DNA from: Carpediemonas membranifera BICM
Taxonomy: Eukaryota > Protista > Fornicata
Direction of reading: 5' to 3'
DNA length: 55,883 bases
Assembly (NCBI GenBank): GCA_019828565.1
Contig: JAHDYR010000019.1
Span: forward strand, 1-55,883
In this document: positions 26,052 to 55,883 of the stretch, piece after piece
How positions within the stretch are numbered: position 1 is the first letter of the stretch
How the letters are laid out: the number at the start of each line of letters is the position of its first letter
Translations under genes and position numbers: made by a program
The notes under the pieces: model-generated
The model's input: only the letters and a program-made list of their open reading frames with translations
Databases searched by the model: none
What the model was told of the DNA's origin: nothing

Positions 26052-27359
26052 TTACTTCCGATCAATCATCGCAATAAACTGCCTGTGGAGTCTTCCGCTT
26101 ACACCTTTTGCGCACTTATTGGTGCTCACCTGCCTGTATCCCTTGTGGCATGTGTCACAGCTGACGTTCTCGCGTCCATGAAGGTCTCTACCACACACTA
26201 TGCAGCGCCGATAGAAGACTTGACCCTCAAACCCCCGTTGGCAGCAGTCGACCATTCTCTTTCGCTGATCTACAGAGAGTAAGACCTGTTCAGTATCATC
26301 CAAGAGGAGCGGACTGGTCTTGGCGACGCATTCATGCACGCGCATGATGACCTTGAGCTTTTCAAGACATTCGGCAGCAGTGGGACGCTTCGTTGGGTCG
26401 AAGTGGAGCATCTGCATTGCCAGGTCGTACATTCCGAGGCAAGTGGGTGGCGTGGTGCCGCGAATCGGTAGTGCAGAGTTCACGTTCACGAAGTTGAGAC
26501 AATCTCTGAGCGGTTCGAGTGTCTTACGTGACAACTGCAACTGCCCACCATAGAAGTGGCACCAGTTCAGCAAGCTACCAAGCTTCAGCATCTTCTTCTT
26601 CTTCCTGTTGTCGATCTGCGCCATGTTTGCACCCATGTCAGTCACCTTCGCGGCAAAGGGGGACTTGGGGAGACCGTAAAAGAGCATCAAAATGACTACA
26701 CCGCACGAGTAAATGTCGGAGGCAGGTGTGACGACATAAGAACAGGCGGGAAGAGCCGATGCAGTCATTCGCGTGAGCTTGGAGGTCTCGTATGGCGCTC
26801 TTTGAACTTCCGGAATGACCGAACGCGCAGCGAGACACTCTTTGAACATCTCTGGGGGTAAATACCCATGCGTGCCGCGATATTCGGATGCTGATTTCAG
26901 TTGTATGACCCAGTTCTCGTCGCTACAAGCCGGCTTCGTCATAGCAGAACCAAAGTCAATGAGGTATCCCTTCTGGTCTGTGCTAAAAAGAAAGTTGTCG
27001 GGCTTAATATCGCAATGAGCAACTCCGTGGTCATGCATGAAGCATACAGACTGCAGTAGATGCGAAACGTAGCGGAACTGAAGGCTGGGCTCAGCCTTAC
27101 AGAGGTCGACGAAGAAGATTTGGTCGACATGAGGAGTCATGAAGGCTGGGACATGGTCTACAAAGCCTGTATCGACGACAGGGAGGACATGCGGACTGTC
27201 CTTGAGCGCTAGCAGGGTGGGAACCTCCATATCGTAGTGCTCATCAATCTTGATCACGACCTTCAGCTTGTCAGCTCCAAACTCGTGCAGATACCGTCTA
27301 CTATTACCACGTGAGGAAGTCTGTTGCTCCAGCTTCTCACTATCGAGCTCGAACACCAT
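26052..27359 (-). CDS. Ser/Thr protein kinase with C-terminal CxxC..CxxC
   Basis: HCDIKPDNFL, DFG, GTHGYLPPE, SDIYSCG. Intact 435 aa. Confidence 0.92.
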   Translation of the reverse strand: MVFELDSEKLEQQTSSRGNSRRYLHEFGADKLKVVIKIDEHYDMEVPTLLALKDSPHVLPVVDTGFVDHVPAFMTPHVDQIFFVDLCKAEPSLQFRYVSHLLQSVCFMHDHGVAHCDIKPDNFLFSTDQKGYLIDFGSAMTKPACSDENWVIQLKSASEYRGTHGYLPPEMFKECLAARSVIPEVQRAPYETSKLTRMTASALPACSYVVTPASDIYSCGVVILMLFYGLPKSPFAAKVTDMGANMAQIDNRKKKKMLKLGSLLNWCHFYGGQLQLSRKTLEPLRDCLNFVNVNSALPIRGTTPPTCLGMYDLAMQMLHFDPTKRPTAAECLEKLKVIMRVHECVAKTSPLLLDDTEQVLLSVDQRKRMVDCCQRGFEGQVFYRRCIVCGRDLHGRENVSCDTCHKGYRQVSTNKCAKGVSGRLHRQFIAMIDRK

Positions 27360-28450: not shown

Positions 28451-28707
28451 CTGTTATTGTCCATTTTATCGTTTCGTCTTAACCTGCACGGCGAAATGCT
28501 CAAACCAGGCAAGGAGTCAGAGCCAGAGCTTCTTTCCATGCTCTAAGTACATCATATGGACTCTCAAGAAGACCTTCGTTTATCTCTAAATAGCTTAAAT
28601 TTAATGAATACTTCATTTCTGAGCAAGAAATTGTAGATTATCTAGCGTTTTGAGGTCGAAGATAATCTAGGGTTTAGCAAAGATAATCTAGGGATGTTGA
28701 CAGCATG

Positions 28708-28796
28708 TAGAGTGACGTCTTCGCTGCGCTCAGGCTCGGGAAGCTCGGCTGCGCCTCGCCGCTCGCAATACAGTTCGTCCAAAAGGCAATAAACTG
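28708..28796 (+). mobile_element. 3'-UTR remnant of family A retrotransposon
   Basis: Matches 32161-32249 with a few substitutions. Followed by the 12-mer at 28797-28808. Confidence 0.85.
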
Positions 28797-28808
28797 TGCT
28801 CCCTCCCG

Positions 28809-31800: not shown

Positions 31801-32249
31801 CGGGTTATTCCCGTGGTCGTTCGCCAGAGTGGTGGTGTTGGTGCTGTGCATGGGAGAGGATGGACCGACGAGATGCGCGACGTTTTGGGCCTTGATGCCG
31901 AAACTGTTGGGCAGATTGCCGACGCGGTCATGATGGCCTGTATGCGGCAGCAAGTTCATGTGTTCCATGCGTTCATGCGCCAGGCGGATGCTGCGCACCG
32001 TCAAGCTGAGGCTAATGGCCTCAACCACTAATACTGATGTTGTTTCTGTACTTTGAGCGTGATCTGCGCGTTATTCGCGTTCGCGTTCGTTGTGACTGAG
32101 TGGAGAGTCGAAAGGGAGATTTCGGAGCGAGCAGTGCCTCAAACCCGGCATACTGACCACTAGAGTGACGTCTTCGCTGCGCTCAGGCTCGCGAAGCTCG
32201 GCTGCGCCTCGCCGCTCGCAATACAGTTCGTCCAAAAGGCAATAAACGA
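28809..32249 (+). mobile_element. CRE-clade non-LTR retrotransposon, family A, full length
   Basis: Single ORF 28811-32031 flanked by tgctccctccc(g/a). Confidence 0.9.
28811..32031 (+). CDS. RT-CCHC-RLE polyprotein, family A (frameshift in C-run near 29380)
   Basis: APGPSG, PVPKG..RGVAIG, QFGVG, LDLSNAYG, QGDPLSP, AYQDD, CPLC..HSLTC, RHD, RAD..LDV. Confidence 0.92.
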
Positions 32250-32261
32250 TGCTCCCTCCCA

Positions 32262-35200
32262 AAATGGAAATGTCGTCATTTTCTGCGCCCCAGGCTGATC
32301 CTGGAGGCCAGATGGCGATGAGAGTTTCCATAACGTCCGATTGGCGCGAAAACGCGCTTGCTCGGGACGTACAGCTTCTGCTGCAGACTGTTCGTACCGA
32401 CTACGCGAAATTCGTCAATGCTGAGTTCATTGACGCACGTTGGTGCAATGTAGAGACAGTGTTTGATACGCTGTGCTCCGAAGCGGCCATCGTCGAGCTG
32501 ATGAAGGACGTGAACAACAAGAAGATTGTGCGTTTGACGGTGAGAGCACTGAAGGACATCGTAGATTCATTCAAGCGGCTCTTAGACGCGGCGGGTGTTA
32601 CTCTTAGCAGTACTCCCAAAGCAACACCGCTGCGTTCTGCCAAAACAGCTCCGTCGGTGGCGGCCGAATTCTTCCGAGAGATCAGGAGAAACGTGATGGG
32701 CAACAACGACCCTGCCAGTCTCCTTCCATCTGTCGAAGAGGTCCACGCCCCTGGTAGCCAGCTGTCATCGCAGCCGAGCGCAGCAGCGCACGTCACCGCG
32801 GTGGGCTTCACCGCAAGCCCCCCGACTGCCCCTCCCGCTCACCCAGCCCATCGACCCGACGTGTTCCTACCACCGGGACAGGCTCTCTTCCTTGGCAAGA
32901 TCGCTCCCCCCAAGAGGGGACGCGAGAAATTCGCCAGAGGCCTGATCGAGAAGCTCAAGCGGGTGGCCCTCGTGGAGAGCGAGGACGAGAAGCGCGCGGC
33001 CCTGAGGACGGTACTCGAGTACCCGAAGGCGCTGTACGCACCGCCGGTTGCATCGAAAGGCCCCAAGCGCCGCCCGTCCAAGTGGCGTAAGGTGATGCGA
33101 CTGGTTCGCCACGGGTTCGTGTCCAAGGCAGCCACTGCGCTGGTAGCTGAGGATGCGGGCCTGTCACCACAGGAGGTGGATGTAGAGCTGAAGAGACTGC
33201 AGGAGGATTACAGTGGCCTGCGCCCAGATGTTCCGTTTAAGGACGTCCCCGCAGAGCCACTGCAGTCAGTTGAGGTGTCCGCTAGGACCCTCAAGACTGT
33301 ACTACACGCTCTAAAGGCCGAGGCGGCCCCAGGGCCGTCGGGCTTGTCCTTCCTCCATATCAGAATAGCAGCGAAGGTGGCCAGACATGACCTCATCGCC
33401 GCATTGATGCCGATCGTACAGGACATCCTGAACGGCGAGACCTACACCGCGGTATTGAGCCACTGCATCATTGTCCCGGTCCCCAAGGGGGCTGGGAAGA
33501 TCCGAGGAGTGGCCATCGGGGACTCGCTTCGGCGGGTTGCGGCGAAGGCTCTCGCCTGGGCTGTGAGGGCCCGCCTGGTCGACGTCGACCGGACCCTCAA
33601 GGATCAGTATGGGGTGGGGGAGAAGTGCGGCCTGGAGAGGCTGAGTGACAGCGTGACAAGGGTCTACAAGGAGGGAGGGACTGTTGTCTCCCTCGACTTA
33701 TCGAACGCTTATGGATGCCTATCTAGGGCGTTCATGTTCGACGTGGTACGCGCTTACATGCCTGCTCTCATGCCCTACCTGTCTACGATGTATCGCCAAG
33801 GGCTCCTATTCTCCACGTCAGGAGGAGTGATAAGGTCAGCTGAGGGCATACATCAAGGAGATCCCCTGTCCCCTATTCTGTTCAGCCTGGGCATCAAGCC
33901 CATTCTGGACGTTCTGCGCGAGGCGTTCCCGGGTTGGCACCTCCAAGCGTACCAAGACGATCTAGTCGCCACGACTGATCGGCCTTTGCAGACGCCCGGT
34001 GTCGGCCGAGAGGCTAACAACCTTGTCGAGATCGCGAGGGAGAAGTTCCTCGAAGTCGGCCTGCGGCTCAACAAGTCGAAGTGCGTTGTGGCGCACAGAG
34101 ACGTTACCGACGGCAACACCTCGGGAGGCGTCCCAAGAAGACGCAGCCTAAACCTCGTGGGCGTTCCGGTTGGGTCCGCTGCTCATGCGATGGGTGAGTT
34201 GGCCAAGGTCAACAGTCGCGTGATGCAACTCCTTAACGCTGCCGGAGAGATGGTGGCCAAGGAGGGGCCGGAGGCAACTGCCCCTGCGTTGATCATTGCG
34301 AAGTATTGTGCGCTCACAAAGTGGGAGCACTTCTTCCGAAACGTTCCCCCCGCAACGGGTGGAGTCGGCAACGGTCTCTACGAGGCTGAGCTCGGATTTG
34401 AGAAGAAAGAGGCGGTCCCGGCCATCCTCCGAATCCTGTCGAGCGAGGCTGAGGTCGATGACGACTTTGCTCTCCGCCTGAGTATGCCGGTAGAAAGACG
34501 CGGGCTTGCGCTGGCAATGCCATCAGTCGTGTGGGCTCCCGCGTTCCTCGCGGCCACGAGACAACTGGCAGGGCTGGGTGTTACACGCTCACCTGACAGC
34601 GTGACGGGTGCCATCAAGTGTCTCCCGCCCCAGCTCAACACGCCGTCGAACTGGCCTAGTGGCTTGGACGATGTGAAGGCTCTTGACGCCGACCACACGC
34701 AGAAGAACTTGGTTCGCCTCGTTGAGGAATCTATTGCCACCAAGCTCTCTGTGAGTGCCGCCGTCTCGCCCAACGTCGTTCGGTCGTTCATGATGGTCGA
34801 CCCGACCTCTCTTGGGCGCTCGGTAACCGATGCCGCTGTTGCCCCCATCTTCCGCAATCACCTGGGCCTCCCCGCATTCACGCCCGGATTTGACGTCTGC
34901 CCTCTCTGCAGGGTACGCACCGTGAACCACCAGTCCGTTGTGTGCAACGCTACTCACACCCTGTGCTGCCCATGCCTCCGTGGAGGCCTGGACGACGAGC
35001 GTCACAACGCTATCAAGGACGGGCTGGTGAGAGACCTGAAGGGTTATGGCTGGAGAGTCCAGTCCAAGGTGTGGTTGAACAAGGCCAGTGAGTGGACCAT
35101 TGACCGGACCAAGCCTATGAAGGCGCGGGCGGACATCCTCCCTCACGAAACCTGGCGTGAAGGCAATCGTCATTGACAACGTCGTCAGCAACCACGTGTC

Positions 35201-35696
35201 TCAGGCCATGACGAGCAAGCGCGCCCAGTACTCCAACTGGGACGTCAAGCTCATACCCGCGGTGACGCTTCACAACGGTGACGTTGGAAGAGTGCACGGA
35301 AGGGGCTGGACGGACGATTTGCGCGATGAACTTGGTCTTAAGGCTGAGCAGGTCCGCGAGATGGCTGATAACGCTTTCTTGGCGTGCATGAGAGGGCAAG
35401 TGCACACATATGCAGCGTTCATCAAGCAATGCGACGCAGCACATGCTGCAGCAGAGGATTTGGGCCTCTCCCACTAATTGTTACTCAATTCTGATATTGG
35501 TGTAGCAATCGGCTCGTGCAGAGCGCTTCAGAGTGTTCTTGTTGGTTTTGTTGACTCGCCAGCGACTCACTGGATGGAGCGACGGAGGACCCCGACGCAC
35601 CCCATAGCCTCAAACTGCTTCGCTGCGCTCAGGCTCGCGAAGCTCGGCTGCGCCTCGCCGCTCGCTAGACAGTTTGTCGTTGATTACATAAAAGTT
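32262..35696 (+). mobile_element. CRE-clade non-LTR retrotransposon, family B, full length
   Basis: ORF 32264-35477 plus family-specific 3' UTR, flanked by the 12-mer. Confidence 0.9.
32264..35477 (+). CDS. RT-CCHC-RLE polyprotein, family B (indel near 35141)
   Basis: QYGVG, QGDPLSP, AYQDD, CPLC..HTLCC, RHN, RAD..IDN. Confidence 0.92.
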
Positions 35697-35708
35697 TGCT
35701 CCCTCCCG

Positions 35709-38700
35709 AAATGGAAATGTCGTCATTTTCTGCGCCCCAGGCTGATCCTGGAGGCCAGATGGCGATGAGAGTTTCCATAACGTCCGATTGGCGCGAAAAC
35801 GCGCTTGTTCGGGACGTACAGCTTCTGCTGCAGACTGTTCGTACCGACTACGCGAAATTCGTCAATGCTGAGTTCATTGACGCACGTTGGTGCAATGTAG
35901 AGACAGTGTTTGATACGCTGTGCTCCGAAGCGGCCATCGTCGAGCTGATGAAGGACGTGAACAACAAGAAGATTGTGCGTTTGACGGTGAGAGCACTGAA
36001 GGACATCGTAGATTCCTTCAAGCGGCTCTTAGACGCGGCGGGTGTTACTCTTAGCAGTACTCCCAAAGCAACACCGCTGCGTTCTGCCAAAACAGCTCCG
36101 TCGGTGGCGGCCGAATTCTTCCGAGAGATCAGGAGAAACGTGATGGGCAACAACGACCCTGCCAGTCTCCTTCCATCTGTCGAAGAGGTCCACGCCCCTG
36201 GTAGCCAGCTGTCATCGCAGCCGAGCGCAGCAGCGCACGTCACCGCGGTGGGCTTCACCGCAAGCCCCCCGACTGCCCCCTCCCGCTCACCCAGCCCATC
36301 GACCCGACGTGTTCCTACCACCGGGACAGGCTCTCTTCCTTGGCAAGATCGCTCCCCCCAAGAGGGGACGCGAGAAATTCGCCAGAGGCCTGATCGAGAA
36401 GCTCAAGCGGGTGGCCCTCGTGGAGAGCGAGGACGAGAAGCGCGCGGCCCTGAGGACGGTACTCGAGTACCCGAAGGCGCTGTACGCACCGCCGGTTGCA
36501 TCGAAAGGCCCCAAGCGCCGCCCGTCCAAGTGGCGTAAGGTGATGCGACTGGTTCGCCACGGGTTCGTGTCCAAGGCAGCCACTGCGCTGGTAGCTGAGG
36601 ATGCGGGCCTGTCACCACAGGAGGTGGATGTAGAGCTGAAGAGACTGCAGGAGGATTACAGTGGCCTGCGCCCAGATGTTCCGTTTAAGGACGTCCCCGC
36701 AGAGCCACTGCAGTCAGTTGAGGTGTCCGCTAGGACCCTCAAGACTGTACTACACGCTCTAAAGGCCGAGGCGGCCCCAGGGCCGTCGGGCTTGTCCTTC
36801 CTCCATATCAGAATAGCAGCGAAGGTGGCCAGACATGACCTCATCGCCGCATTGATGCCGATCGTACAGGACATCCTGAACGGCGAGACCTACACCGCGG
36901 TATTGAGCCACTGCATCATTGTCCCGGTCCCCAAGGGGGCTGGGAAGATCCGAGGAGTGGCCATCGGGGACTCGCTTCGGCGGGTTGCGGCGAAGGCTCT
37001 CGCCTGGGCTGTGAGGGCCCGCCTGGTCGACGTCGACCGGACCCTCAAGGATCAGTATGGGGTGGGGGAGAAGTGCGGCCTGGAGAGGCTGAGTGACAGC
37101 GTGACCAGGGTCTACGAGGAGGGAGGAACTGTTGTCTCCCTCGACTTATCGAACGCTTATGGATGCCTATCTAGGGCGTTCATGTTCGACGTGGTACGCG
37201 CTTACATGCCTGCTCTCATGCCCTACCTGTCTACGATGTATCGCCAAGGGCTCCTATTCTCCACGTCAGGAGGAGTGATGAGGTCAGCTGAGGGCATACA
37301 TCAAGGAGATCCCCTGTCCCCTATTCTGTTCAGCCTGGGCATCAAGCCCATTCTGGACGTTCTGCGCGAGGCGTTCCCGGGTTGGCACCTCCAAGCGTAC
37401 CAAGACGATCTAGTCGCCACGACTGATCGGCCTTTGCAGACGCCCGGTGTCGGCCGAGAGGCTAACAACCTTGTCGAGATCGCGAGGGAGAAGTTCCTCG
37501 AAGTCGGCCTGCGGCTCAACAAGTCGAAGTGCGTTGTGGCGCACAGAGACGTTACCGACGGCAACACCTCGGGAGGCGTCCCAAGAAGACGCAGCCTAAA
37601 CCTCGTGGGCGTTCCGGTTGGGTCCGCTGCTCATGCGATGGGTGAGTTGGCCAAGGTCAACAGTCGCGTGATGCAACTCCTTAACGCTGCCGGAGAGATG
37701 GTGGCCAAGGAGGGGCCGGAGGCAACTGCCCCTGCGTTGATCATTGCGAAGTATTGTGCGCTCACAAAGTGGGAGCACTTCTTCCGTAACGTTCCCCCCG
37801 CAACGGGTGGAGTCGGCAACGGTCTCTACGAGGCTGAGCTCGGATTTGAGAAGAAAGAGGCGGTCCCGGCCATCCTCCGAATCCTGTCGAGCGAGGCTGA
37901 GGTCGATGACGACTTTGCTCTCCGCCTGAGTATGCCGGTCGAAAGACGCGGGCTTGCGCTGGCAATGCCATCAGTCGTGTGGGCTCCCGCGTTCCTCGCG
38001 GCCACGAGACAACTGGCAGGGCTGGGTGTTACACGCTCACCTGACAGCGTGACGGGTGCCATCAAGTGTCTCCCGCCCCAGCTCAACACGCCGTCGAACT
38101 GGCCTAGTGGCTTGGACGATGTGAAGGCTCTTGACGCCGACCACACGCAGAAGAACTTGGTTCGCCTCGTTGAGGAATCTATTGCCACCAAGCTCTCTGT
38201 GAGTGCCGCCGTCTCGCCCAACGTCGTTCGGTCGTTCATGATGGTCGACCCGACCTCTCTTGGGCGCTCGGTAACCGATGCCGCTGTTGCCCCCATCTTC
38301 CGCAATCACCTGGGCCTCCCCGCATTCACGCCCGGATTTGACGTCTGCCCTCTCTGCAGGGTACGCACCGTGAACCACCAGTCCGTTGTGTGCAACGCTA
38401 CTCACACCCTGTGCTGCCCATGCCTCCGTGGAGGCCTGGACGACGAGCGTCACAACGCTATCAAGGACGGGCTGGTGAGAGACCTGAAGGGTTATGGCTG
38501 GAGAGTCCAGTCCGAGGTGTGGTTGAACAAGGCCAGTGAGTGGACCATTGACCGGACCAAGCCTATGAAGGCGCGGGCGGACATCCTCCTCACGAAACCT
38601 GGCGTGAAGGCAATCGTCATTGACAACGTCGTCAGCAACCACGTGTCTCAGGCCATGACGAGCAAGCGCGCCCAGTACTCCAACTGGGACGTCAAGCTCA

Positions 38701-38865
38701 TACCCGCGGTGACGCTTCACAACGGTGACGTTGGAAGAGTGCACGGAAGGGGCTGGACGGACGATTTGCGCGATGAACTTGGTCTTAAGGCTGAGCAGGT
38801 CCGCGAGATGGCTGATAACGCTTTCTTGGCGTGCATGAGAGGGCAAGTGCACACATATGCAGCGT
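35709..38865 (+). mobile_element. Family B retrotransposon, 3'-truncated
   Basis: ORF 35711-38867 (indel near 36280). Identity to family B stops at cacatatgcagcgt, so the last codons and 3' UTR are lost. Confidence 0.9.
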
Positions 38866-43196: not shown

Positions 43197-43269
43197 GCTC
43201 CTTTAGCTCAGTTGGTAGAGCGTGTGATTAGTAATCACAAGGTCCTCGGTTCGAATCCGGGAGGGAGCA
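43197..43269 (+). tRNA. tRNA-Thr(AGT)
   Basis: GCTCCTT/AGGGAGC acceptor, GCTC-AGTTGGTA-GAGC D arm, TGTGA-TTAGTAA-TCACA anticodon arm, CTCGG-TTCGAAT-CCGGG T arm. No encoded CCA. Confidence 0.97.
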
Positions 43270-43401
43270 AACTTTTATGTAATCAACGACAAACTGTCTA
43301 GCGAGCGGCGAGGCGCAGCCGAGCTTCGCGAGCCTGAGCGCAGCGAAGCAGTTTGAGGCTATGGGGTGCGTCGGGGTCCTCCGTCGCTCCATCCAGTGAG
43401 T
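43270..43401 (-). mobile_element. 5'-truncated family B insertion (132 bp)
   Basis: Matches the end of the B 3' UTR. Flanked by cgggagggagca at 43258 and 43402. Confidence 0.92.
43273..43276 (+). terminator. Probable Pol III terminator (TTTT) supplied by the retroelement 3' end
   Basis: T4 run 3 nt after the discriminator base, within family B terminal sequence. Confidence 0.5.
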
Positions 43402-43413
43402 CGGGAGGGAGCA

Positions 43414-46400
43414 TCGTTTATTGCCTTTTGGACGAACTGTATTGCGAGCGGCGAGGCGCAGCCGAGCTTCGCGAGCCTGAGCGCAGCGAAGACGTCACTC
43501 TAGTGGTCAGTATGTCGGGTTTGAGGCACTGCTCGCTCCGAAATCTCCCTTTCGACTCTCCACTCAGTCACAACGAACGCGAACGCGAATAACGCGCAGA
43601 TCACGCTCAAAGTACAGAAACAACATCAGTATTAGTGGTTGAGGCCATTAGCCTCAGCTTGACGGTGCGCAGCATCCGCCTGGCGCATGAACGCATGGAA
43701 CACATGAACTTGCTGCCGCATACAGGCCATCATGACCGCGTCGGCAATCTGCCCAACAGTTTCGGCATCAAGGCCCAAAACGTCGCGCATCTCATCGGTC
43801 CATCCTCTCCCATGCACAGCACCAACACCACCACTCTGGCGAACGACCACGGGAATAACCCGGACGTTCCAGTTGGCGTACTGCTCCTTCTTGCTCCGCA
43901 TAGATGCAGACGCGTGATTGCTCACCACTACGTCAAGCACAACGGGTTCGGTATGGCCCGGTCTGGTCAAGAGGAGGTCCGCCCGCGCCTTGACCCGTTT
44001 GGTCCGGTCCACAGTCCACTCGCTGCCCCGTCCGAGCCAATGCTCAACTCTTACGCGCCAGGGGTGCCCGCGCAGCAGTTTGGCGAGCGTGTCGCGAATT
44101 TGGTCGTGCCGCTCCGATCCCAGCCCCTCCCTCAGGAAGGGACAGGTAAGAGAATGCTCGGCTGAGCAGGGGACAGACCGGTGGTTAACACTACGGGCCA
44201 GGCATAGCGGACAGACGTCGTGGCCTGTCTCAAAGGCAGGAAGGCCGACATGGTTGCGAAGCATCGGTGCAGCACCCTCGTCACAGGGGTTACGACCCAT
44301 AGCGGCTGGATCAGCCGCGAGTAGAGACCTGATCACGTTTGGCGAGTCGACTGAAACAGTCAGTTGGCTGGAAATGTTATCCTGCAGGAGGCGTACCAAC
44401 TTCTTCTGCGTGCTCTCGAGTGAGAGCTTTCTGACATCGCCATATGATGTCGGCCAATCCTTGGGCGTCGCGGCGAGAGCCGGGATGCATGGCAGTGCGT
44501 CTTGGATGAGAGCCTCGGGCCTTTCGACCTTCAGCTCTATGAGTTGTCGTGCGGCACCCAGATAGGCTGGGGCCCACACAACAGAGGGCATGGCCAATCC
44601 GAGCCCGCCTTGACTGACCGGCAGACAGAGCCTTGCGGCGAAGTCCTTGTCAGTCTCTGCGCTGGACTGGAGCAGCTTCAGGATGGCGGGGACCACCTTC
44701 TGCTGTTCGAAGTCCAGTTGCGACTCGAACATGTCACCCCCGCCCGGCGAAACATTGCGGAAGAAGTGCTCCCACTTGGTGAGGGCACACAGTTTCGTCA
44801 CTAGGAGGGCAGGGGCGACGGCTTCCGCGCCAATGTCAGAGACCATCGATGCAGCAGCGTCAAGCAGCTCCATAACCTTGCGGTTAGCAGAGCCTAGCTC
44901 CCGCATGATGTGCGTGGCGGAGCCGATTGGAACACCAACCAGCTTGGTATCGCGTCTCCGTGGGACGCCACCAGTTGTGTTGCCGTCAACGACATCCTTA
45001 TGGGCTAGCACGCACTTGGCACGGTTGAGGCGGAGGCCAACCTCGTTGAACTTCTGAGCGGCGAGTTCTGTGAGATTGTTGGCCTCACGGCCGACCCCAG
45101 GCGACTGTAGCGGGCGGGTAGTGGTGGCTACAATGTCATCCTGGTAGGCACGGATGCACCACCCAGGGAAAGCCTCGCGCAAGACGTCCAGAATGGGCTT
45201 AACGCCTAAGCTGAAAAGAATTGGCGAGAGCGGGTCCCCTTGGTGAATGCCTTCAGCCGACCTCATGGTGATGCCGGAGGTAGAGAAAAGTAAGCCCCGT
45301 CGGTACATGGTCGACAGGTATGGGATGAGCGCCGGCATGTAGGCCGCCACCACCTTCATGGCGAAGGCCCTCGACAAGCATCCATAGGCGTTGGAAAGGT
45401 CGAGTGTGAGCACTGTACCGCCACTTCGGTAGACTGCACTCACCTCCTCTCCCAACCTCTCCAAGCCGCACTTCTCACCTACTCCGAACTGGTCCTTCAG
45501 GGCACGATCGACGTCAACCAGCCGCTTACGGACGGACCAGGCGAGTGCCTTTGCCGCCACACGGCGAATAGAGTCGCCGATCGCGACCCCTCGGACCTTC
45601 CCTTCACCTTTCGGCACAGGGACGAGAATGCAATGACTGAACACATCAGTGTAAGCTTCTCCGTTCAGGATGTCCTGAACCAGCGGGAGCAGAGCCTGGA
45701 CTAGTTCGCGCCTTGATGTCTTGTAGGCGATCTTCAGGTGAAGGAACGATAGCCCGGAGGGCCCCGGGGCCGCCTCAGACTTGAGTGTGTTGAGGATGGT
45801 CTTCAGAGTCTTAGAGGAAACTTCGACACACTGCAGGGGTTCTCAGGGACGTCTCGCATGGGGACGTCGGGACAAAGCCCGTTGAACCCAACCTGGAGGT
45901 CCCGCAGTTGAGCGTCGATTTCAGTCGGTGTCAGGTCAGTCTCATTGGCTACCATGGACGTGGCGGCCTTCGAGACAAAACCCGTGGCGAATCAGGTTCA
46001 GCGTCCGACGCCACTTGCTCGCGCTAGCGCGTCGTCCGCCTCGGTCCGACGGCGGTGCGTACAGCGTCTTGGGGTAGTCTACAACCTTAAGAGCCTCAGC
46101 CCGCTTGGCGTCGTCACCTGTCGCGTTGTTCACCTCCCTCAATCGTTCAATAAGGCCTCGTGTGAACTTCTCGCGCCCGCGCTTGGGCGGAGCGATCTTT
46201 CCGAGGAACAAGGCCTGACCCGGGGAAGGAAGACATCGGGTCGATGAGCAGGGGTAGTGGGAGGTGCTGATGGCGGGGTTAGGGGGAAACCAACCGCCGA
46301 AACGTGAGCTGCCGTGTCTGCCTGGACCTCTTCGTCAACAGGCTGCGATGACAGACCCTCGTCGTCCGTCGCGATCTCTACTGCAGAGGGAGGGACATTT

Positions 46401-46855
46401 GCAGCGGTCTCTGGACGCATAGCGTTGTCTCGTATCGTGCAGGCGATAATCGCAATGGACTTGGGGGCTGTGTTTGCAGAACGCAACGAAGTTGCCGTTG
46501 GCAGCGCCTGTGTGGTGATGCTGTGGGCCTTAAGGAGGTCCTTGAAGCTGTCAGCAATCGCCTTCAGGGCTTTCACGGTAAAGCGTACGATGTGTTTGTT
46601 CTGGACGTCGCGCATGAGCTCGACAACCGCAGTTTCAGAGCACAATGTGTTGAACACCGTGTCCGTATCACACCACAGTCTGTCAATTAGGCTTATGTCG
46701 ACGAACTTCGCGTAGGTGCTATGAACTTCGGTAAGAAGAGCACGAACATCCTCGGCGAAGACGCTTTCGCGCCATACGAGTCTCGTACGTCGTCGAGTCA
46801 CCATCTGGCCTCCAGGATCAGCCTGGGGGCACAGAAAATGACGACATTTCCATTT
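43414..46855 (-). mobile_element. Family A retrotransposon, full length (ORF 43632-46853, indels)
   Basis: Near-identical to 28809-32249. 12-mer on both sides. Confidence 0.92.
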
Positions 46856-46867
46856 CGGGAGGGAGCA

Positions 46868-49800
46868 AACTTTTATGTAATCAACGACAAACTGTCTAGC
46901 GAGCGGCGAGGCGCAGCCGAGCTTCGCGAGCCTGAGCGCAGCGAAGCAGTTTGAGGCTATGGGGTGCGTCGGGGTCCTCCGTCGCTCCATCCAGTGAGTC
47001 GCTGGCGAGTCAACAAAACCAACAAGAACACTCTGAAGCGCTCTGCACGAGCCGATTGCTACACCAATATCAGAATTGAGTAACAATTAGTGGGAGAGGC
47101 CCAAATCCTCTGCTGCAGCATGTGCTGCGTCGCATTGCTTGATGAACGCTGCATATGTGTGCACTTGCCCTCTCATGCACGCCAAGAAAGCGTTATCAGC
47201 CATCTCGCGGACCTGCTCAGCCTTAAGACCAAGTTCATCGCGCAAATCGTCCGTCCAGCCCCTTCCGTGCACTCTTCCAACGTCACCGTTGTGAAGCGTC
47301 ACCGCGGGTATGAGCTTGACGTCCCAGTTGGAGTACTGGGCGCGCTTGCTCGTCATGGCCTGAGACACGTGGTTGCTGACGACGTTGTCAATGACGATTG
47401 CCTTCACGCCAGGTTTCGTGAGGAGGATGTCCGCCCGCGCCTTCATAGGCTTGGTCCGGTCAATGGTCCACTCACTGGCCTTGTTCAACCACACCTCGGA
47501 CTGGACTCTCCAGCCATAACCCTTCAGGTCTCTCACCAGCCCGTCCTTGATAGCGTTGTGACGCTCGTCGTCCAGGCCTCCACGGAGGCATGGGCAGCAC
47601 AGGGTGTGAGTAGCGTTGCACACAACGGACTGGTGGTTCACGGTGCGTGCCCTGCAGAGAGGGCAGACGTCAAATCCGGGCGTGAATGTGGGGAGGCCCA
47701 GGTGATTGCGGAAGATGGGGGCAACAGCGGCATCGGTTACCGAGCGCCCAAGAGAGGTCGGGTCGACCATCATGAACGACCGAACGACGTTGGGCGAGAC
47801 GGCGGCACTCACAGAGAGCTTGGTGGCAATAGATTCCTCAACGAGGCGAACCAAGTTCTTCTGCGTGTGGTCGGCGTCAAGAGCCTTCACATCGTCCAAG
47901 CCACTAGGCCAGTTCGACGGCGTGTTGAGCTGGGGCGGGAGACACTTGATGGCACCCGTCACGCTGTCAGGTGAGCGTGTAACACCCAGCCCTGCCAGTT
48001 GTCTCGTGGCCGCGAGGAACGCGGGAGCCCACACGACTGATGGCATTGCCAGCGCAAGCCCGCGTCTTTCTACCGGCATACTCAGGCGGAGAGCAAAGTC
48101 GTCATCGACCTCAGCCTCGCTCGACAGGATTCGGAGGATGGCCGGGACCGCCTCTTTCTTCTCAAATCCGAGCTCAGCCTCGTAGAGACCGTTGCCGACT
48201 CCACCCGTTGCGGGGGGAACGTTACGGAAGAAGTGCTCCCACTTTGTGAGCGCACAATACTTCGCAATGATCAACGCAGGGGCAGTTGCCTCCGCCCCCT
48301 CCTTGGCCACCATCTCTCCGGCAGCGTTAAGGAGTTGCATCACGCGACTGTTGACCTTGGCCAACTCACCCATCGCATGAGCAGCGGACCCAACCGGAAC
48401 GCCCACGAGGTTTAGGCTGCGTCTTCTTGGGACGCCTCCCGAGGTGTTGCCGTCGGTAACGTCTCTGTGCGCCACAACGCACTTCGACTTGTTGAGCCGC
48501 AGGCCGACTTCGAGGAACTTCTCCCTCGCGATCTCGACAAGGTTGTTAGCCTCTCGGCCGACACCGGGCGTCTGCAAAGGCCGATCAGTCGTGGCGACTA
48601 GATCGTCTTGGTACGCTTGGAGGTGCCAACCCGGGAACGCCTCGCGCAGAACGTCCAGAATGGGCTTGATGCCCAGGCTGAACAGAATAGGGGACAGGGG
48701 ATCTCCTTGATGTATGCCCTCAGCTGACCTTATCACTCCTCCTGACGTGGAGAATAGGAGCCCTTGGCGATACATCGTAGACAGGTAGGGCATGAGAGCA
48801 GGCATGTAAGCGCGTACCACGTCGAACATGAACGCCCTAGATAGGCATCCATAAGCGTTCGATAAGTCGAGGGAGACAACAGTCCCTCCCTCCTCGTAGA
48901 CCCTGGTCACGCTGTCACTCAGCCTCTCCAGGCCGCACTTCTCCCCCACCCCATACTGATCCTTGAGGGTCCGGTCGACGTCGACCAGGCGGGCCCTCAC
49001 AGCCCAGGCGAGAGCCTTCGCCGCAACCCGCCGAAGCGAGTCCCCGATGGCCACTCCTCGGATCTTCCCGGCCCCTTGGGGACCGGGACAATGATGCAGT
49101 GGCTCAATACCGCGGTGTAGGTCTCGCCGTTCAGGATGTCCTGTACGATCGGCATCAATGCGGCGATGAGGTCATGTCTGGCCACCTTCGCTGCTATTCT
49201 GATATGGAGGAAGGACAAGCCCGACGGCCCTGGGGCCGCCTCGGCCTTTAGAGCGTGTAGTACAGTCTTGAGGGTCCCTAGCGGACACCTCAACTGACTG
49301 CAGTGGCTCTGCGGGGACGTCCTTAAACGGAACATCTGGGCGCAGGCCACTGTAATCCTCCTGCAGTCTCTTCAGCTCTACATCCACCTCCTGTGGTGAC
49401 AGGCCCGCATCCTCAGCTACCAGCGCAGTGGCTGCCTTGGACACGAACCCGTGGCGAACCAGTCGCATCACCTTACGCCACTTGGACGGGCGGCGCTTGG
49501 GGCCTTTCGATGCAACCGGCGGTGCGTACAGCGCCTTCGGGTACTCGAGTACCGTCCTCAGGGCCGCGCGCTTCTCGTCCTCGCTCTCCACGAGGGCCAC
49601 CCGCTTGAGCTTCTCGATCAGGCCTCTGGCGAATTTCTCGCGTCCCCTCTTGGGGGAGCGATCTTGCCAAGGAAGAGAGCCTGTCCCGGTGGTAGGAACA
49701 CGTCGGGTCGATGGGCTGGGTGAGCGGGAGGGGCAGTCGGGGGGCTTGCGGTGAAGCCCACCGCGGTGACGTGCGCTGCTGCGCTCGGCTGCGATGACAG

Positions 49801-50300
49801 CTGGCTACCAGGGGCGTGGACCTCTTCGACAGATGGAAGGAGACTGGCAGGGTCGTTGTTGCCCATCACGTTTCTCCTGATCTCTCGGAAGAATTCGGCC
49901 GCCACCGACGGAGCTGTTTTGGCAGAACGCAGCGGTGTTGCTTTGGGAGTACTGCTAAGAGTAACACCCGCCGCGTCTAAGAGCCGCTTGAATGAATCTA
50001 CGATGTCCTTCAGTGCTCTCACCGTCAAACGCACAATCTTCTTGTTGTTCACGTCCTTCATCAGCTCGACGATGGCCGCTTCGGAGCACAGCGTATCAAA
50101 CACTGTCTCTACATTGCACCAACGTGCGTCAATGAACTCAGCATTGACGAATTTCGCGTAGTCGGTACGAACAGTCTGCAGCAGAAGCTGTACGTCCCGA
50201 GCAAGCGCGTTTTCGCGCCAATCGGACGTTATGGAAACTCTCATCGCCATCTGGCCTCCAGGATCAGCCTGGGGCGCAGAAAATGACGACATTTCCATTT
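46868..50300 (-). mobile_element. Family B retrotransposon, full length (ORF 47087-50298, indels)
   Basis: Near-identical to 32262-35696. 12-mer on both sides. Confidence 0.92.
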
Positions 50301-50312
50301 CGGGAGGGAGCA

Positions 50313-53300
50313 TCGTTTATTGCCTTTTGGACGAACTGTATTGCGAGCGGCGAGGCGCAGCCGAGCTTCGCGAGCCTGAGCGCAGCGAAGACGTCACTCT
50401 AGTGGTCAGTATGTCGGGTTTGAGGCACTGCTCGCTCCGAAATCTCCCTTTCGACTCTCCACTCAGTCACAACGAACGCGAACGCGAATAACGCGCAGAT
50501 CACGCTCAAAGTACAGAAACAACATCAGTATTAGTGGTTGAGGCCATTAGCCTCAGCTTGACGGTGCACAGCATCCGCCTGGCGCATGAACGCATGGAAC
50601 ACATGAACTTGCTGCCGCATACAGGCCATCATGACCGCGTCGGCAATCTGCCCAACAGTTTCGGCATCAAGGCCCAAAACGTCGCGCATCTCGTCGGTCC
50701 ATCCTCTCCCATGCACAGCACCAACACCACCACTCTGGCGAACGACCACGGGAATAACCCGGACGTTCCAGTTGGCGTACTGCTCCTTCTTGCTCCGCAT
50801 AGATGCAGACGCGTGATTGCTCACCACTACGTCAAGCACAACGGGTTCGGTATGGCCCGGTCTGGTCAAGAGGAGGTCCGCCCGCGCCTTGACCCGTTTG
50901 GTCCGGTCCACAGTCCACTCGCTGCCCCGTCCGAGCCAATGCTCAACTCTTACGCGCCAGGGGTGCCCGCGCAGCAGTTTGGCGAGCGTGTCGCGTATTT
51001 GGTCGTGCCGCTCCGATCCCAGCCCCTCCCCTCAGGAAGGGACAGGTAAGAGAATGCTCGGCTGAGCAGGGGACAGACCGGTGGTTAACACTACGGGCCA
51101 GGCATAGCGGACAGACGTCGTGGCCTGTCTCAAAGGCAGGAAGGCCGACATGGTTGCGAAGCATCGGTGCAGCACCCTCGTCACAGGGGTTACGACCCAT
51201 AGCGGCTGGATCAGCCGCGAGTAGAGACCTGATCACGTTTGGCGAGTCGACTGAAACAGTCAGTTGGCTGGAAATGTTATCCTGCAGGAGGCGTACCAAC
51301 TTCTTCTGCGTGCTCTCGAGTGAGAGCTTTCTGACATCGCCATATGATGTCGGCCAATCCTTGGGCGTCGCGGCGAGAGCCGGGATGCATGGCAGTGCGT
51401 CTTGGATGAGAGCCTCGGGCCTTTCGACCTTCAGCTCTATGAGTTGTCGTGCGGCACCCAGATAGGCTGGGGCCCACACAACAGAGGGCATGGCCAATCC
51501 GAGCCCGCCTTGACTGACCGGCAGACAGAGCCTTGCGGCGAAGTCCTTGTCAGTCTCTGCGCTGGACTGGAGCAGCTTCAGGATGGCGGGGACCACCTTC
51601 TGCTGTTCGAAGTCCAGTTGCGACTCGAACATGTCACCCCCGCCCGGCGAAACATTGCGGAAGAAGTGCTCCCACTTGGTGAGGGCACACAGTTTCGTCA
51701 CTAGGAGGGCAGGGGCGACGGCTTCCGCGCCAATGTCAGAGACCATCGATGCAGCAGCGTCAAGCAGCTCCATAACCTTGCGGTTAGCAGAGCCTAGCTC
51801 CCGCATGATGTGCGTGGCGGAGCCGATTGGAACACCAACCAGCTTGGTATCGCGTCTCCGTGGGACGCCACCAGTTGTGTTGCCGTCAACGACATCCTTA
51901 TGGGCTAGCACGCACTTGGCACGGTTGAGGCGGAGGCCAACCTCGTTGAACTTCTGAGCGGCGAGTTCTGTGAGATTGTTGGCCTCACGGCCGACCCCAG
52001 GCGACTGTAGCGGGCGGGTAGTGGTGGCTACAATGTCATCCTGGTAGGCACGGATGCACCACCCAGGGAAAGCCTCGCGCAAGACGTCCAGAATGGGCTT
52101 AACGCCTAAGCTGAAAAGAATTGGCGAGAGCGGGTCCCCTTGGTGAATGCCTTCAGCCGACCTCATGGTGATGCCGGAGGTAGAGAAAAGTAAGCCCCGT
52201 CGGTACATGGTCGACAGGTATGGGATGAGCGCCGGCATGTAGGCCGCCACCACCTTCATGGCGAAGGCCCTCGACAAGCATCCATAGGCGTTGGAAAGGT
52301 CGAGTGTGAGCACTGTACCGCCACTTCGGTAGACTGCACTCACCTCCTCTCCCAACCTCTCCAAGCCGCACTTCTCACCTACTCCGAACTGGTCCTTCAG
52401 GGCACGATCGACGTCAACCAGCCGCTTACGGACGGACCAGGCGAGTGCCTTTGCCGCCACACGGCGAATAGAGTCGCCGATCGCGACCCCTCGGACCTTC
52501 CCTTCACCTTTCGGCACAGGGACGAGAATGCAATGACTGAACACATCAGTGTAAGCTTCTCCGTTCAGGATGTCCTGAACCAGCGGGAGCAGAGCCTGGA
52601 CTAGTTCGCGCCTTGATGTCTTGTAGGCGATCTTCAGGTGAAGGAACGATAGCCCGGAGGGCCCCGGGGCCGCCTCAGACTTGAGTGTGTTGAGGATGGT
52701 CTTCAGAGTCTTAGAGGAAACTTCGACACACTGCAGGGGGTTCTCGGGGACGTCTCGCATGGGGACGTCGGGACAAAGCCCGTTGAACCCAACCTGGAGG
52801 TCCCGCAGTTGAGCGTCGATTTCAGTCGGTGTCAGGTCAGTCTCATTGGCTACCATGGACGTGGCGGCCTTCGAGACAAACCCGTGGCGAATCAGGTTCA
52901 GCGTCCGACGCCACTTGCTCGCGCTAGCGCGTCGTCCGCCCTCGGTCCGACGGCGGTGCGTACAGCGTCTTGGGGTAGTCTACAACCTTAAGAGCCTCAG
53001 CCCGCTTGGCGTCGTCACCTGTCGCGTTGTTCACCTCCCTCAATCGTTCAATAAGGCCTCGTGTCGAACTTCTCGCGCCCGCGCTTGGGCGGAGCGATCT
53101 TTCCGAGGAACAAGGCCTGACCCGGGGAAGGAAGACATCGGGTCGATGAGCAGGGGTAGTGGGAGGTGCTGATGGCGGGGTTAGGGGAAACCAACCGCCA
53201 GAAACGTGAGCTGCCGTGTCTGCCTGGACCTCTTCGTCAACAGGCTGCGATGACAGACCCTCGTCGTCCGTCGCGATCTCTACTGCAGAGGGAGGGACAT

Positions 53301-53756
53301 TTGTAGCGGTCTCTGGACGCATAGCGTTGTCTCGTATCGTGCAGGCGATAATCGCAATGGACTTGGGGGCTGTGTTTGCAGAACGCAACGAAGTTGCCGT
53401 TGGCAGCGCCTGTGTAGTGATGCTGTGGGCCTTAAGGAGGTCCTTGAAGCTGTCAGCAATCGCCTTCAGGGCTTTCACGGTAAAGCGTACGATGTGTTTG
53501 TTCTGGACGTCGCGCATGAGCTCGACAACCGCAGTTTCAGAGCACAATGTGTTGAACACCGTGTCCGTATCACACCACAGTCTGTCAATTAGGCTTATGT
53601 CGACGAACTTCGCGTAGGTGCTATGAACTTCGGTAAGAAGAGCACGAACATCCTCGGCGAAGACGCTTTCGCGCCATACGAGTCTCGTACGTCGTCGAGT
53701 CACCATCTGGCCTCCAGGATCAGCCTGGGGCACAGAAAATGACGACATTTCCATTT
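50313..53756 (-). mobile_element. Family A retrotransposon, full length (ORF 50531-53754, indels)
   Basis: Near-identical to 28809-32249. 12-mer on both sides. Confidence 0.92.
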
Positions 53757-53768
53757 CGGGAGGGAGCA

Positions 53769-55883
53769 AACTTTTTATGTAATCAACGACAAACTGTCTA
53801 GCGAGCGGCGAGGCGCAGCCGAGCTTCGCGAGCCTGAGCGCAGCGAAGCAGTTTGAGGCTATGGGGTGCGTCGGGGTCCTCCGTCGCTCCATCCAGTGAG
53901 TCGCTGGCGAGTCAACAAAACCAACAAGAACACTCTGAAGCGCTCTGCACGAGCCGATTGCTACACCAATATCAGAATTGAGTAACAATTAGTGGGAGAG
54001 GCCCAAATCCTCTGCTGCAGCATGTGCTGCGTCGCATTGCTTGATGAACGCTGCATATGTGTGCACTTGCCCTCTCATGCACGCCAAGAAAGCGTTATCA
54101 GCCATCTCGCGGACCTGCTCAGCCTTAAGACCAAGTTCATCGCGCAAATCGTCCGTCCAGCCCCTTCCGTGCACTCTTCCAACGTCACCGTTGTGAAGCG
54201 TCACCGCGGGTATGAGCTTGACGTCCCAGTTGGAGTACTGGGCGCGCTTGCTCGTCATGGCCTGAGACACGTGGTTGCTGACGACGTTGTCAATGACGAT
54301 TGCCTTCACGCCAGGTTTCGTGAGGAGGATGTCCGCCCGCGCCTTCATAGGCTTGGTCCGGTCAATGGTCCACTCACTGGCCTTGTTCAACCACACCTCG
54401 GACTGGACTCTCCAGCCATAACCCTTCAGGTCTCTCACCAGCCCGTCCTTGATAGCGTTGTGACGCTCGTCGTCCAGGCCTCCACGGAGGCATGGGCAGC
54501 ACAGGGTGTGAGTAGCGTTGCACACAACGGACTGGTGGTTCACGGTGCGTGCCCTGCAGAGAGGGCAGACGTCAAATCCGGGCGTGAATGTGGGGAGGCC
54601 CAGGTGATTGCGGAAGATGGGGGCAACAGCGGCATCGGTTACCGAGCGCCCAAGAGAGGTCGGGTCGACCATCATGAACGACCGAACGACGTTGGGCGAG
54701 ACGGCGGCACTCACAGAGAGCTTGGTGGCAATAGATTCCTCAACGAGGCGAACCAAGTTCTTCTGCGTGGTCGGCGTCAAGAGCCTTCACATCGTCCAAG
54801 CCACTAGGCCAGTTCGACGGCGTGTTGAGCTGGGGCGGGAGACACTTGATGGCACCCGTCACGCTGTCAGGTGAGCGTGTAACACCCAGCCCTGCCAGTT
54901 GTCTCGTGGCCGCGAGGAACGCGCGGGGAGCCCACGACTGATGGCATTGCCAGCGCAAGCCCGCGTCTTTCTACCGGCATACTCAGGCGGAGAGCAAAGT
55001 CGTCATCGACCTCAGCCTCGCTCGACAGGATTCGGAGGATGGCCGGGACCGCCTCTTTCTTCTCAAATCCGAGCTCAGCCTCGTAGAGACCGTTGCCGAC
55101 TCCACCCGTTGCGGGGGGAACGTTACGGAAGAAGTGCTCCCCACTTTGTGAGCGCACAATACTTCGCAATGATCAACGCAGGGGCAGTTGCCTCCGGCCC
55201 CTCCCCAGCCACCATCTCTCCGGCAGCGTTAAGGGAGTTGCATCACGCGACTGTTGACCTTGGCCAACTCACCCATCGCATGAGCAGCGGACCCAACCGG
55301 AACGCCCACGAGGTTTAGGCTGCGTCTTCTTGGGACGCCTCGAGGTGTTGCCGTCGGTAACGTCTCTGTGCGCCACAACGCACTTCGACTTGTTGAGCCG
55401 CAGGCCGACTTCGAGGAACTTCTCCCTCGCGATCTCGACAAGGTTGTTAGCCTCGGCCGACACCGGGCGTCTGCAAAGGCCGATCAGTCGTGGCGACTAG
55501 ATCGTCTTGGTACGCTTGGAGGTGCCAACCCGGGAACGCCTCGCGCAGAACGTCCAGAATGGGCTTGATGCCCAGGCTGAACAGAATAGGGGACAGGGGA
55601 TCTCCTTGATGTATGCCCTCAGCTGACCTTATCACTCCCTCCTGACGTGGAGAATAGAGAGCCCTTGGCGATACATCGTAGACAGGTAGGGCATGAGAGC
55701 AGGCATGTAAGCGTACCACGTCGAACATGAACGCCCTAGATAGGCATCCATAAGCGTTCGATAAGTCGAGGGAGACAACAGTTCCTCCCTCCTCGTAGAC
55801 CCTGGTCACGCTGTCACTCAGCCTCTCCAGGCCGCACTTCTCTACATGCTTACTGATCGCTCGCGGGTCCGGTCGACGTCGAC
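53769..55883 (-). mobile_element. Family B retrotransposon, runs off window end
   Basis: RT-to-RLE portion and 3' UTR of family B, error-rich. Confidence 0.9.

Follow-up and report, generated by a model that had tools for sequence, protein, structure and literature searches.

Contig C19 of Carpediemonas membranifera, a free-living metamonad, was analyzed over its full length of 55,883 nt (hereafter the window; the assembly totals 24.2 Mb). ARAGORN and Rfam detect only one tRNA gene in the window, a tRNA-Thr(AGT) that is identical to four other copies in the genome, and the gene is accompanied by two stacks of retrotransposon copies that lack long terminal repeats (LTRs) and a poly(A) tail (Table 1). 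Repeat analysis and BLAST comparison with two reference copies indicate that the copies in the stacks belong to a single element that has two subfamilies. Subfamily A is 3444 nt long with a 3' tip ending in ...GGCAATAAACGA, and subfamily B is 3435 nt long with a 3' tip ending in ...CATAAAAGTT. The original prediction for this locus, made from the sequence of the window, described stacked retrotransposons and did not separate the two subfamilies; the stacks are confirmed. Outward from the tRNA, the right stack consists of a truncated B copy followed by A, B, A, and a B copy that leaves the contig, while the left stack, read on the plus strand, consists of a fragment of A followed by A, B, and a B copy that has lost its 3' end. 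The evidence described below indicates that the stacks are very probably formed by subfamilies A and B of a site-specific non-LTR retrotransposon that integrates behind tRNA-Thr through target-primed reverse transcription (TPRT).

The last 12 nt of the tRNA gene, CGGGAGGGAGCA, are found at each junction in both stacks. A pattern search of the window returned nine matches to this 12-mer with at most one mismatch, compared with 0.36 expected, and 0 of 100 shuffled sequences reached nine. Eight of the matches are the sites given in the original prediction, all of which were correctly placed, and the ninth, at 36274, is an internal near-match that does not mark a junction. Each pair of neighboring copies is separated by a single 12-mer, which lies between the 5' end of one 3.44-kb element and the 3' end of the next. 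The elements lie antisense to the tRNA; in the copy closest to it (R0), the 3' end begins at the base right after tRNA position 73. The junctions identified by BLAST and the Rfam score of the tRNA thus confirm the earlier claim that the element 3' ends abut the discriminator base in antisense orientation and leave the tRNA intact.

Table 1. Coordinates of the tRNA gene, the 12-mers and the element copies in the window, and of loci occupied by related families at other tRNA genes (given by contig).
Feature	Position	Strand	Basis or remark
tRNA-Thr(AGT), complete, target	43197..43269	+	ARAGORN; Rfam RF00005, 69.3 bits
Target 12-mer CGGGAGGGAGCA, tRNA positions 62-73	43258..43269	+	
Duplicated 12-mers, right stack	43402-43413, 46856-46867, 50301-50312, 53757-53768	+	
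Duplicated 12-mers, left stack	28797-28808, 32250-32261 (one mismatch), 35697-35708	-	
R0: subfamily B, 5'-truncated, last 132 nt	43270..43401	-	Between tRNA end and 12-mer; 2 nt microhomology at break
R1: subfamily A, full length	43414..46855	-	BLAST to reference copy, 99.6%
Window copy R2: subfamily B, full length	46868..50300	-	BLAST
Window copy R2, conserved 3' block	~46886-46946	-	In the 3' untranslated region
Window copy R2, conserved 5' hairpin region	~50244-50300	-	
R3: subfamily A, full length	50313..53756	-	BLAST
R4: subfamily B, 3' 2.1 kb	53769..55883	-	BLAST; continues beyond window end
Left stack, 89-nt 3' fragment, subfamily A	28708..28796	+	Left edge cut by CATGCTGT-ended DNA transposon
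L1: subfamily A, full length	28809..32249	+	900-aa open frame at 29329-32028
L2: subfamily B, full length	32262..35696	+	975-aa open frame ending at 35176; reverse transcriptase residues 412-638
L3: subfamily B without last 278 nt	35709..38865	+	Followed by unrelated sequence
tRNA-Arg(ACG) loci	C1:64519-72083; C5:356510-363823 and 395132; C24:40862-44471; C26:1243926-1249475; C47:18252-22044		
tRNA-Met(CAT) loci	C44:85901-89678; C16:56281; C16:734042; C44:59558		
tRNA-Ala(AGC) loci	L029 (C63:891000-891700); L030 (C48:64100-64900); C6:8860/11625; C26:100740/99624; C8:221026/223792		

The same arrangement is found throughout the genome. The 3' end of an A or B element lies, in antisense orientation, at position +1 of all five identical tRNA-Thr(AGT) genes (on contigs C39, C24, C19, C6, and C1) and of both tRNA-Thr(CGT) genes (C68 and C3). 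The proximal copy belongs to subfamily B at six of these seven genes, and at least five different upstream flanks are represented among the occupied loci. A search for empty tRNA-Thr loci, which the original prediction had proposed, returned none, as every AGT or CGT gene found is occupied. The prediction had also named many copies at sites without the 12-mer as evidence that would speak against it. A genome-wide census with the 24-nt core of the conserved block in the 3' untranslated region (UTR) as the probe identified 69 element 3' regions, and 62 of them lie 47-49 nt from the 12-mer or one of its variants. In the seven exceptions the 3' tip has been removed by another insertion, or the copy is an old relic at 80-93% identity. 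The census thus did not turn up the evidence that would have spoken against the prediction.

The junctions also reveal how the 12-mer arises. The two tRNA-Thr(CGT) genes end in CGGAAGGGAGCA, a single-base variant of CGGGAGGGAGCA. In the C68 stack, this local variant is also found at the junctions that come next, indicating that the 12-mer is copied from the local target. Of the 5' junctions, 29 are exact and full length, three contain an extra T, and six are truncated. The six truncated copies have different break points, and each retains an intact 12-mer together with 0-3 nt of microhomology at the break, which is a classic signature of TPRT. The 12-mer behaves as a true 12-bp target-site duplication, as had been proposed, since at the Thr(CGT) loci it follows the local variant and since copies truncated at the 5' end are flanked by it. 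The insertions therefore show the hallmarks of TPRT: their 3' junctions are precise, their 5' ends are truncated to varying extents, and the target site is duplicated. One further site (L010; C4:535507-535560) contains a 21-nt mini-insert, in which a 3' tip is joined to a piece of the 5' end; the insert sits between two 12-mers, with TTTTT following. No tRNA is left upstream of this site, which looks like the remnant of a copy that has undergone extreme deletion and may retain an original tRNA trailer.

Each element encodes one protein of about 1070 amino acids, and the A and B proteins are 63% identical. The protein analyzed here is the natural open reading frame (ORF) of the tRNA-proximal B copy on C39 (L001:1523-4732, minus strand), which is intact over 1070 codons, with neither a consensus nor frame repair. 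A layout with two ORFs or a frameshift was considered for subfamily A and rejected, as the breaks sit at C4/C5 runs whose length varies between copies. The protein comprises an N-terminal region of ~200 residues that has no recognizable fold, an R2-like reverse transcriptase (RT) together with its thumb and linker, and a CCHC motif that precedes a PD-(D/E)xK restriction-like endonuclease (RLE). The RT domain matches Pfam RVT_1 (6e-15), and the C-terminal motif series CPLC..H..C, RHN, RADIL, IDNVV, and K..Y is typical of the RLE of non-LTR elements. In an alignment with 35 relatives, C879, C882, C902, H914, D957, and D971 are at least 90% conserved. The AlphaFold model, computed from 51 sequences, has a mean predicted local distance difference test score (pLDDT) of 82.9, and its best matches among the folds in the PDB are R2 proteins engaged in TPRT, with the endonuclease included (Foldseek E 4e-22). 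Alignment of the model with R2Bm using VIA-align places residues 233-1057 on R2Bm residues 262-1107 (Z 25.5 over 696 residues), and the RT fold aligns with the RTs of R2 and LINE-1 at Z 25-28. Together, the RVT_1 match, the conserved motifs, and the R2-like predicted fold support the assignment to site-specific non-LTR retrotransposons with a C-terminal RLE that was made in the original prediction.

The N-terminal region of the protein is distinct. R2 residues before about 260 have no counterpart in the model, and searches of the first 340 residues detected neither a C2H2 nor a CCHC motif and returned no match in Pfam. The first 200 residues, which are poorly predicted and are disordered or helical in the model, contain no zinc finger or Myb motif. 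The Pfam search also returned no match to Exo_endo_phos, indicating that the protein lacks an N-terminal endonuclease of the apurinic/apyrimidinic endonuclease (APE) type, which characterizes the tRNA-associated elements TRE and Dewa; the endonuclease of the element is the C-terminal RLE. The predicted structure is thus that of an R2-like RT-RLE enzyme with a different N-terminal module.

Relatives of the protein were examined in a FastTree phylogeny of RT sequences, the best 106 relatives drawn from 1.84 billion proteins, a set that includes no named CRE, NeSL, R4, HERO, or Genie reference. The family groups with two unnamed sequences (from a Logan run and from GCA_002919055.1) and with another Carpediemonas family at 100% local support, and the neighbors of this group are unnamed metagenome proteins. 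Protein searches, cluster look-ups, and the ESM Atlas likewise returned no named CRE, NeSL, R4, HERO, or Giardia element, with relatives coming only from Carpediemonas, Cafeteria, Closterium, and Spirometra or being unnamed metagenome proteins. The closest foreign relatives, P0009 (SRR31444219) and P0010 (GCA_002919055.1), encode proteins that are 35-38% identical to that of the Carpediemonas element. They are arranged in tandem, head to tail, with the short junction CACCG (...GCAATAAA(G/A)ACGA CACCG ATGGAA...; L047:6030-6060 and L048:140-165) and a 3' tip that resembles that of subfamily A, and no tRNA is present on their contigs. A gene on one of these contigs (L047:3291-4853) combines RVT_1 with a weak match to Dam methyltransferase, which fits the Dam-carrying retrotransposons reported for Carpediemonadida (bioRxiv 10.64898/2026.05.21.726589).

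The junctions suggest a mechanism in which the tRNA gene is rebuilt during integration. The first nick would fall on the tRNA-sense strand, since the strand that ends in ...GGGAGCA-3' continues into the complement of the element 3' end. In the proposed mechanism, the RLE nicks this strand between base 73 and position +1, which is the nick right after the discriminator base that the original prediction envisaged and that the geometry of the junction implies. The 3'-OH at base 73 would then prime cDNA synthesis from the 3' end of the element RNA. A second nick, in the opposite strand between tRNA positions 61 and 62 and thus 12 bp upstream of the first, would leave two 12-nt 3' overhangs, which would be filled in to give the 12-bp duplication. 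The tRNA gene would stay whole because the duplication restores its 3' end. Three exact copies of the 12-mer outside a tRNA or stack are empty (C6:935250, C36:198014, and C54:1236487), which indicates that the 12-mer alone is insufficient for recognition; the additional determinant is probably the adjoining T-arm/B-box. A tRNA-proximal site would then be the only good target, such that the proximal element would be the youngest and stacks would grow mainly at the tRNA. Consistent with growth at this end, the sole intact ORF found belongs to a proximal copy, the outer ends of stacks are cut by other transposons, and copies everywhere have few private substitutions.

Integration at this position also affects the sequence that follows the tRNA. 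Subfamily B, which ends in ...AAAAGTT, places AACTTTT after the tRNA and therefore a T4 run at +4, while subfamily A places TCGTTTATTGCCTTTT there. Other tRNA genes of the host were sampled for comparison, and 20 of these 29 have a run of T4 or longer within 8 nt of the 3' end, in most cases at +1 to +4. The element thus places a T-run where an RNA polymerase III (Pol III) terminator is expected, and an occupied tRNA gene should still be expressed. Based on these sequences, the occupied tRNA-Thr genes appear to obtain their Pol III terminator from the element. These genes must presumably be the working ones, since no unoccupied AGT or CGT gene was found.

Comparison of the two subfamilies points to selection on the protein and on short RNA segments. 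The nonsynonymous (dN) and synonymous (dS) divergences between A and B are 0.32 and 2.3, respectively, and the ratio of about 0.13 at saturated synonymous sites indicates that both subfamilies have long been under purifying selection. Private substitutions number 0-5 per 3.4-kb copy everywhere. Two segments are identical in A and B, namely the first 57 nt and a 50-nt block in the 3'UTR that lies 20-25 nt from the 3' end. The 5' segment folds as a stable hairpin (z -3.8 and -3.9), although A and B do not share the pairing of its first bases, and the 3'UTR block has no significant fold (z about 0 and +1.5). The RNA of R2 has protein-binding motifs at both its 5' and 3' ends, and by analogy the conserved 5' segment and 3' block are probably RNA signals for protein binding. 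The ATG lies 3 nt from the junction, leaving essentially no 5'UTR, which implies that transcription begins in the upstream unit. No known ribozyme was found at the 5' junction, as an Rfam search at E values up to 5 matched only the tRNA.

Several observations weigh against integration by TPRT behind tRNA-Thr or are not predicted by it. Most copies contain frame breaks and only one intact ORF was found among the copies retrieved, although the breaks at C4/C5 homopolymers may be assembly noise. The assembly contains no empty tRNA-Thr site and hence no pre-insertion flank for comparison. No tRNA-Thr(TGT) gene was found among the 63 of 497 tRNA candidates that were scored; candidates that were 78% identical proved to be tRNA-Phe and tRNA-Ala, and none turned up in 16 further tRNA groups. 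The positions of the nicks, the ends of the transcripts, and the expression of the tRNAs are all inferred. Finally, both variants of the 12-mer occur together in some stacks. For example, the C68 stack lies behind a GGAA-type tRNA but has GGGA-type junctions in its distal part, and the C1:53-55 kb stack includes a junction of the GGAA type; simple serial insertion at one tRNA does not predict such mixtures. Mixed 12-mers imply either recombination between stacks or delivery of the 12-mer on read-through RNA. In one alternative account, the stacks would have grown, after one or a few insertions, mainly by unequal crossing-over or segmental duplication of a unit of element plus 12-mer rather than by serial retrotransposition. 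The alternation of A and B in the right stack with a 6.9-kb period and 99-100% identity would fit such growth, as would the near identity of copies genome-wide, the 12-mer variants that differ from the local tRNA, and the tRNA 5' flanks shared by C39 and C1 and by C68 and C3. It is nonetheless unlikely to be the main process, as the order of subfamilies varies (B-B-A on C39, B-A on C68), truncated copies of many lengths each have their own 12-mer, the paralogous C68 and C3 loci have different proximal elements (B and A), and at least five independent types of flank are occupied. Recombination probably contributes, yet it cannot create junctions. If the 12-mer were instead carried on the element RNA by read-through and joined by annealing, no duplication from staggered nicks would be needed. 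R2 is thought to use co-transcribed target sequence for joining, and the precision of the 29 exact full-length 5' junctions, the non-local variants next to full-length copies, and an ATG so close to the junction that transcripts start upstream and could include the 12-mer are all consistent with this idea. As an explanation of the duplication it is improbable, since 5'-truncated copies, in which the cDNA fell short of the 5' end of the RNA, keep an intact 12-mer, which at C68 is the local variant. Annealing and a true 12-bp stagger are compatible, and annealing may help to join full-length copies.

The remaining alternatives concern the ancestry of the element and the quality of the assembly. 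The original prediction assigned the stacks to the CRE clade, which would make them relatives of CRE1/2, SLACS, CZAR, and MoTeR that switched from spliced-leader genes or telomeres to a tRNA. A protist element with a single ORF encoding RT and RLE would suit this label, and one of the nearest ESM Atlas clusters consists mostly of Euglenozoa, which provides a lead only. In the RT tree, however, the only partners of the family in its group are a second Carpediemonas family and two unnamed sequences, and all named neighbors are Carpediemonas proteins. NeSL-1_TV, which targets tRNA-Pro in another metamonad, is an equally plausible relative (PMC4640811), and the CRE assignment is consequently doubtful. 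That the arrays result from mis-joined or collapsed repeats can be dismissed almost entirely; differences in homopolymer length between copies do suggest imperfect polishing, but junctions of the same structure are present on nine contigs that differ in their unique flanks and in their truncated copies. Integration of subfamilies A and B by TPRT behind tRNA-Thr therefore remains the preferred explanation of the stacks.

Similar families appear to be present at other tRNA genes of the same genome. A genome-wide protein search with a related Carpediemonas RT identified dozens of related RT genes, many of which adjoin other tRNA genes; the families at these genes were compared by coordinates and short sequence patterns only. 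At tRNA-Arg(ACG), the last 13 nt of the gene followed by ATTTTATATC are found at five of five genes and again at internal junctions ~3.6 kb away, and the RT genes are antisense to the tRNA. At tRNA-Met(CAT), all four genes have the last 12 nt followed by TCCTTTTACT; the pattern recurs a single time, at an internal junction 3754 nt downstream, and the RT gene that lies between the tRNA gene and this junction is antisense. In contrast, tRNA-Asn(GTT), which served as a negative control, has a unique flank. These patterns indicate at least two additional putative RLE families with the same geometry, in which a 12-13 bp duplication is placed at the 3' edge of a tRNA. Other tRNA genes show a different arrangement. 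Copies of tRNA-Ala(AGC) share an identical stretch of at least 360 nt that lies upstream in the same orientation and ends at the tRNA, with RLE-type RT genes ~1.1 kb further upstream, and the tRNA looks like part of the repeated unit. The tRNA-Glu(CTC) loci resemble this layout by coordinates, with the family upstream in the same orientation, and the Ala(AGC) and Glu(CTC) families seem to follow another design.

Site-specific elements that encode an RLE are well known and include R2, CRE/SLACS/CZAR, NeSL, Utopia, and R4. The best structural match to the Carpediemonas protein over RT, thumb, linker, CCHC, and RLE is provided by R2 (8gh6, 8ibw, 9nl3, and 9dou), which also has a single ORF, is strictly specific for a site in an RNA gene present in many copies, and inserts with precise 3' junctions and often with a truncated 5' end. 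In contrast to R2, which interrupts and inactivates the 28S gene with little or no duplication, the Carpediemonas element leaves the tRNA whole and generates a duplication of 12 bp. Additionally, the N-terminal zinc finger and Myb and the HDV (hepatitis delta virus)-like ribozyme of R2 were not found in the Carpediemonas element. CRE1/CRE2, SLACS, CZAR, and MoTeR are also protist or fungal RLE elements with a strict multicopy target, which is the spliced-leader gene of trypanosomatids or, for MoTeR, the telomere rather than the 3' edge of tRNA-Thr. The RLE-type elements GilM and GilT of Giardia, attributed to Arkhipova and Morrison (2001), reportedly form head-to-tail tandem arrays at telomeres; by description only, these arrays in a fornicate relative are like the Carpediemonas stacks, but they are telomeric and not associated with a tRNA. 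The Dictyostelium elements TRE5/TRE3, yeast Ty3/Ty1, and Dada likewise use tRNA genes as safe landing sites, and none of them is known to insert through a nick placed with sequence precision at the discriminator base. The endonuclease of TRE elements is of the APE type, and these elements rely on Pol III factors to insert tens of bp up- or downstream of the gene; Ty elements are LTR elements with an integrase, and Dada belongs to the DNA transposons (PMC8869645).

RLE families that target particular tRNA genes have already been published. These include NeSL-1_TV of Trichomonas vaginalis, which targets tRNA-Pro (Kojima & Jurka 2015, PMC4640811), and LIN15_SM and LIN25_SM of the planarian Schmidtea, which target tRNA-Arg and tRNA-Glu, respectively (PMC4640811). 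The statement in the original prediction that tRNA-associated non-LTR elements use APE endonucleases was therefore incomplete, and its suggestion of a possibly undescribed tRNA-specific system has to be narrowed, as tRNA specificity of RLE elements is known while the tRNA-Thr target and the geometry of the intact edge may be new. Compared by description (PMC4640811), the three families likewise encode an RLE and use one tRNA gene as the target, which in each case differs from tRNA-Thr, and NeSL-1_TV also resides in a metamonad. NeSL and Utopia proteins usually have one to three N-terminal zinc fingers (PMC4640811), some with a Ulp1 protease, whereas the Carpediemonas protein is without zinc fingers. 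A literature search found no paper describing non-LTR elements of Carpediemonas. Rather than a new kind of system, the element represents a distinct, non-destructive variant, with a rebuilt gene, an apparently element-supplied terminator, and no zinc-finger/Myb module. What may be new is the tRNA-Thr target, the exact insertion at its 3' edge that leaves the gene intact, full occupancy, and the sister families that appear to share this geometry.

Elements of the R2 type are being developed for writing genes into safe sites, and mechanistic work has almost all been done on 28S rDNA. The Carpediemonas genome offers related, apparently young families that would cut at the same position of different tRNAs (Thr, Arg, and Met), and in a protein without the zinc-finger/Myb module of R2 it becomes directly testable how RLE elements read and change their target. 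It is conceivable, with only a small probability, that a common protein "ruler" docks on the invariant T-arm/B-box of any tRNA gene and cuts after base 73 and, on the other strand, 12 bp upstream, and that the choice of tRNA is made largely by pairing of the 12-nt overhang with read-through target sequence. If so, specificity could be changed via the RNA flanks, and the element would be a naturally re-targetable RLE retrotransposon. The locus also represents an extreme case of tolerated parasitism, as every tRNA-Thr(AGT) and tRNA-Thr(CGT) gene found is occupied and each is intact.

Additional observations concern the architecture of the stacks and their surroundings. The two stacks of the window converge on a single tRNA, and the left stack has lost any target of its own. 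L1 and R1, which are A copies in opposite stacks, are 100% identical over 2437 nt (29824-32260 and 43403-45839), which exceeds the usual 99.5-99.7% among copies. Five stacks are cut at their distal ends by transposons that terminate in CATACTGT or CATGCTGT, with inserts starting in one of these sequences at 28560-28707 of the window and at L056:3834-, L026:5120-, L055:2904-, and L057:1632-. These ends are the termini of large DNA transposons, and the stacks are a landing zone for other mobile elements. The C68 and C1 stacks are interrupted by large ORFs with a Phage_integrase domain (L005:6666-9998 and L004:3760-6651). In the window, weak matches to RNase H (E 0.002) and tyrosine recombinase (E 0.002) in the region right after L3 (38866-40900) suggest a fragment of a DIRS-like element. 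Just to the left of the stacks, a 435-residue ORF on the minus strand (26052-27359) matches Pfam Pkinase (1e-20) and looks like an ordinary host gene.

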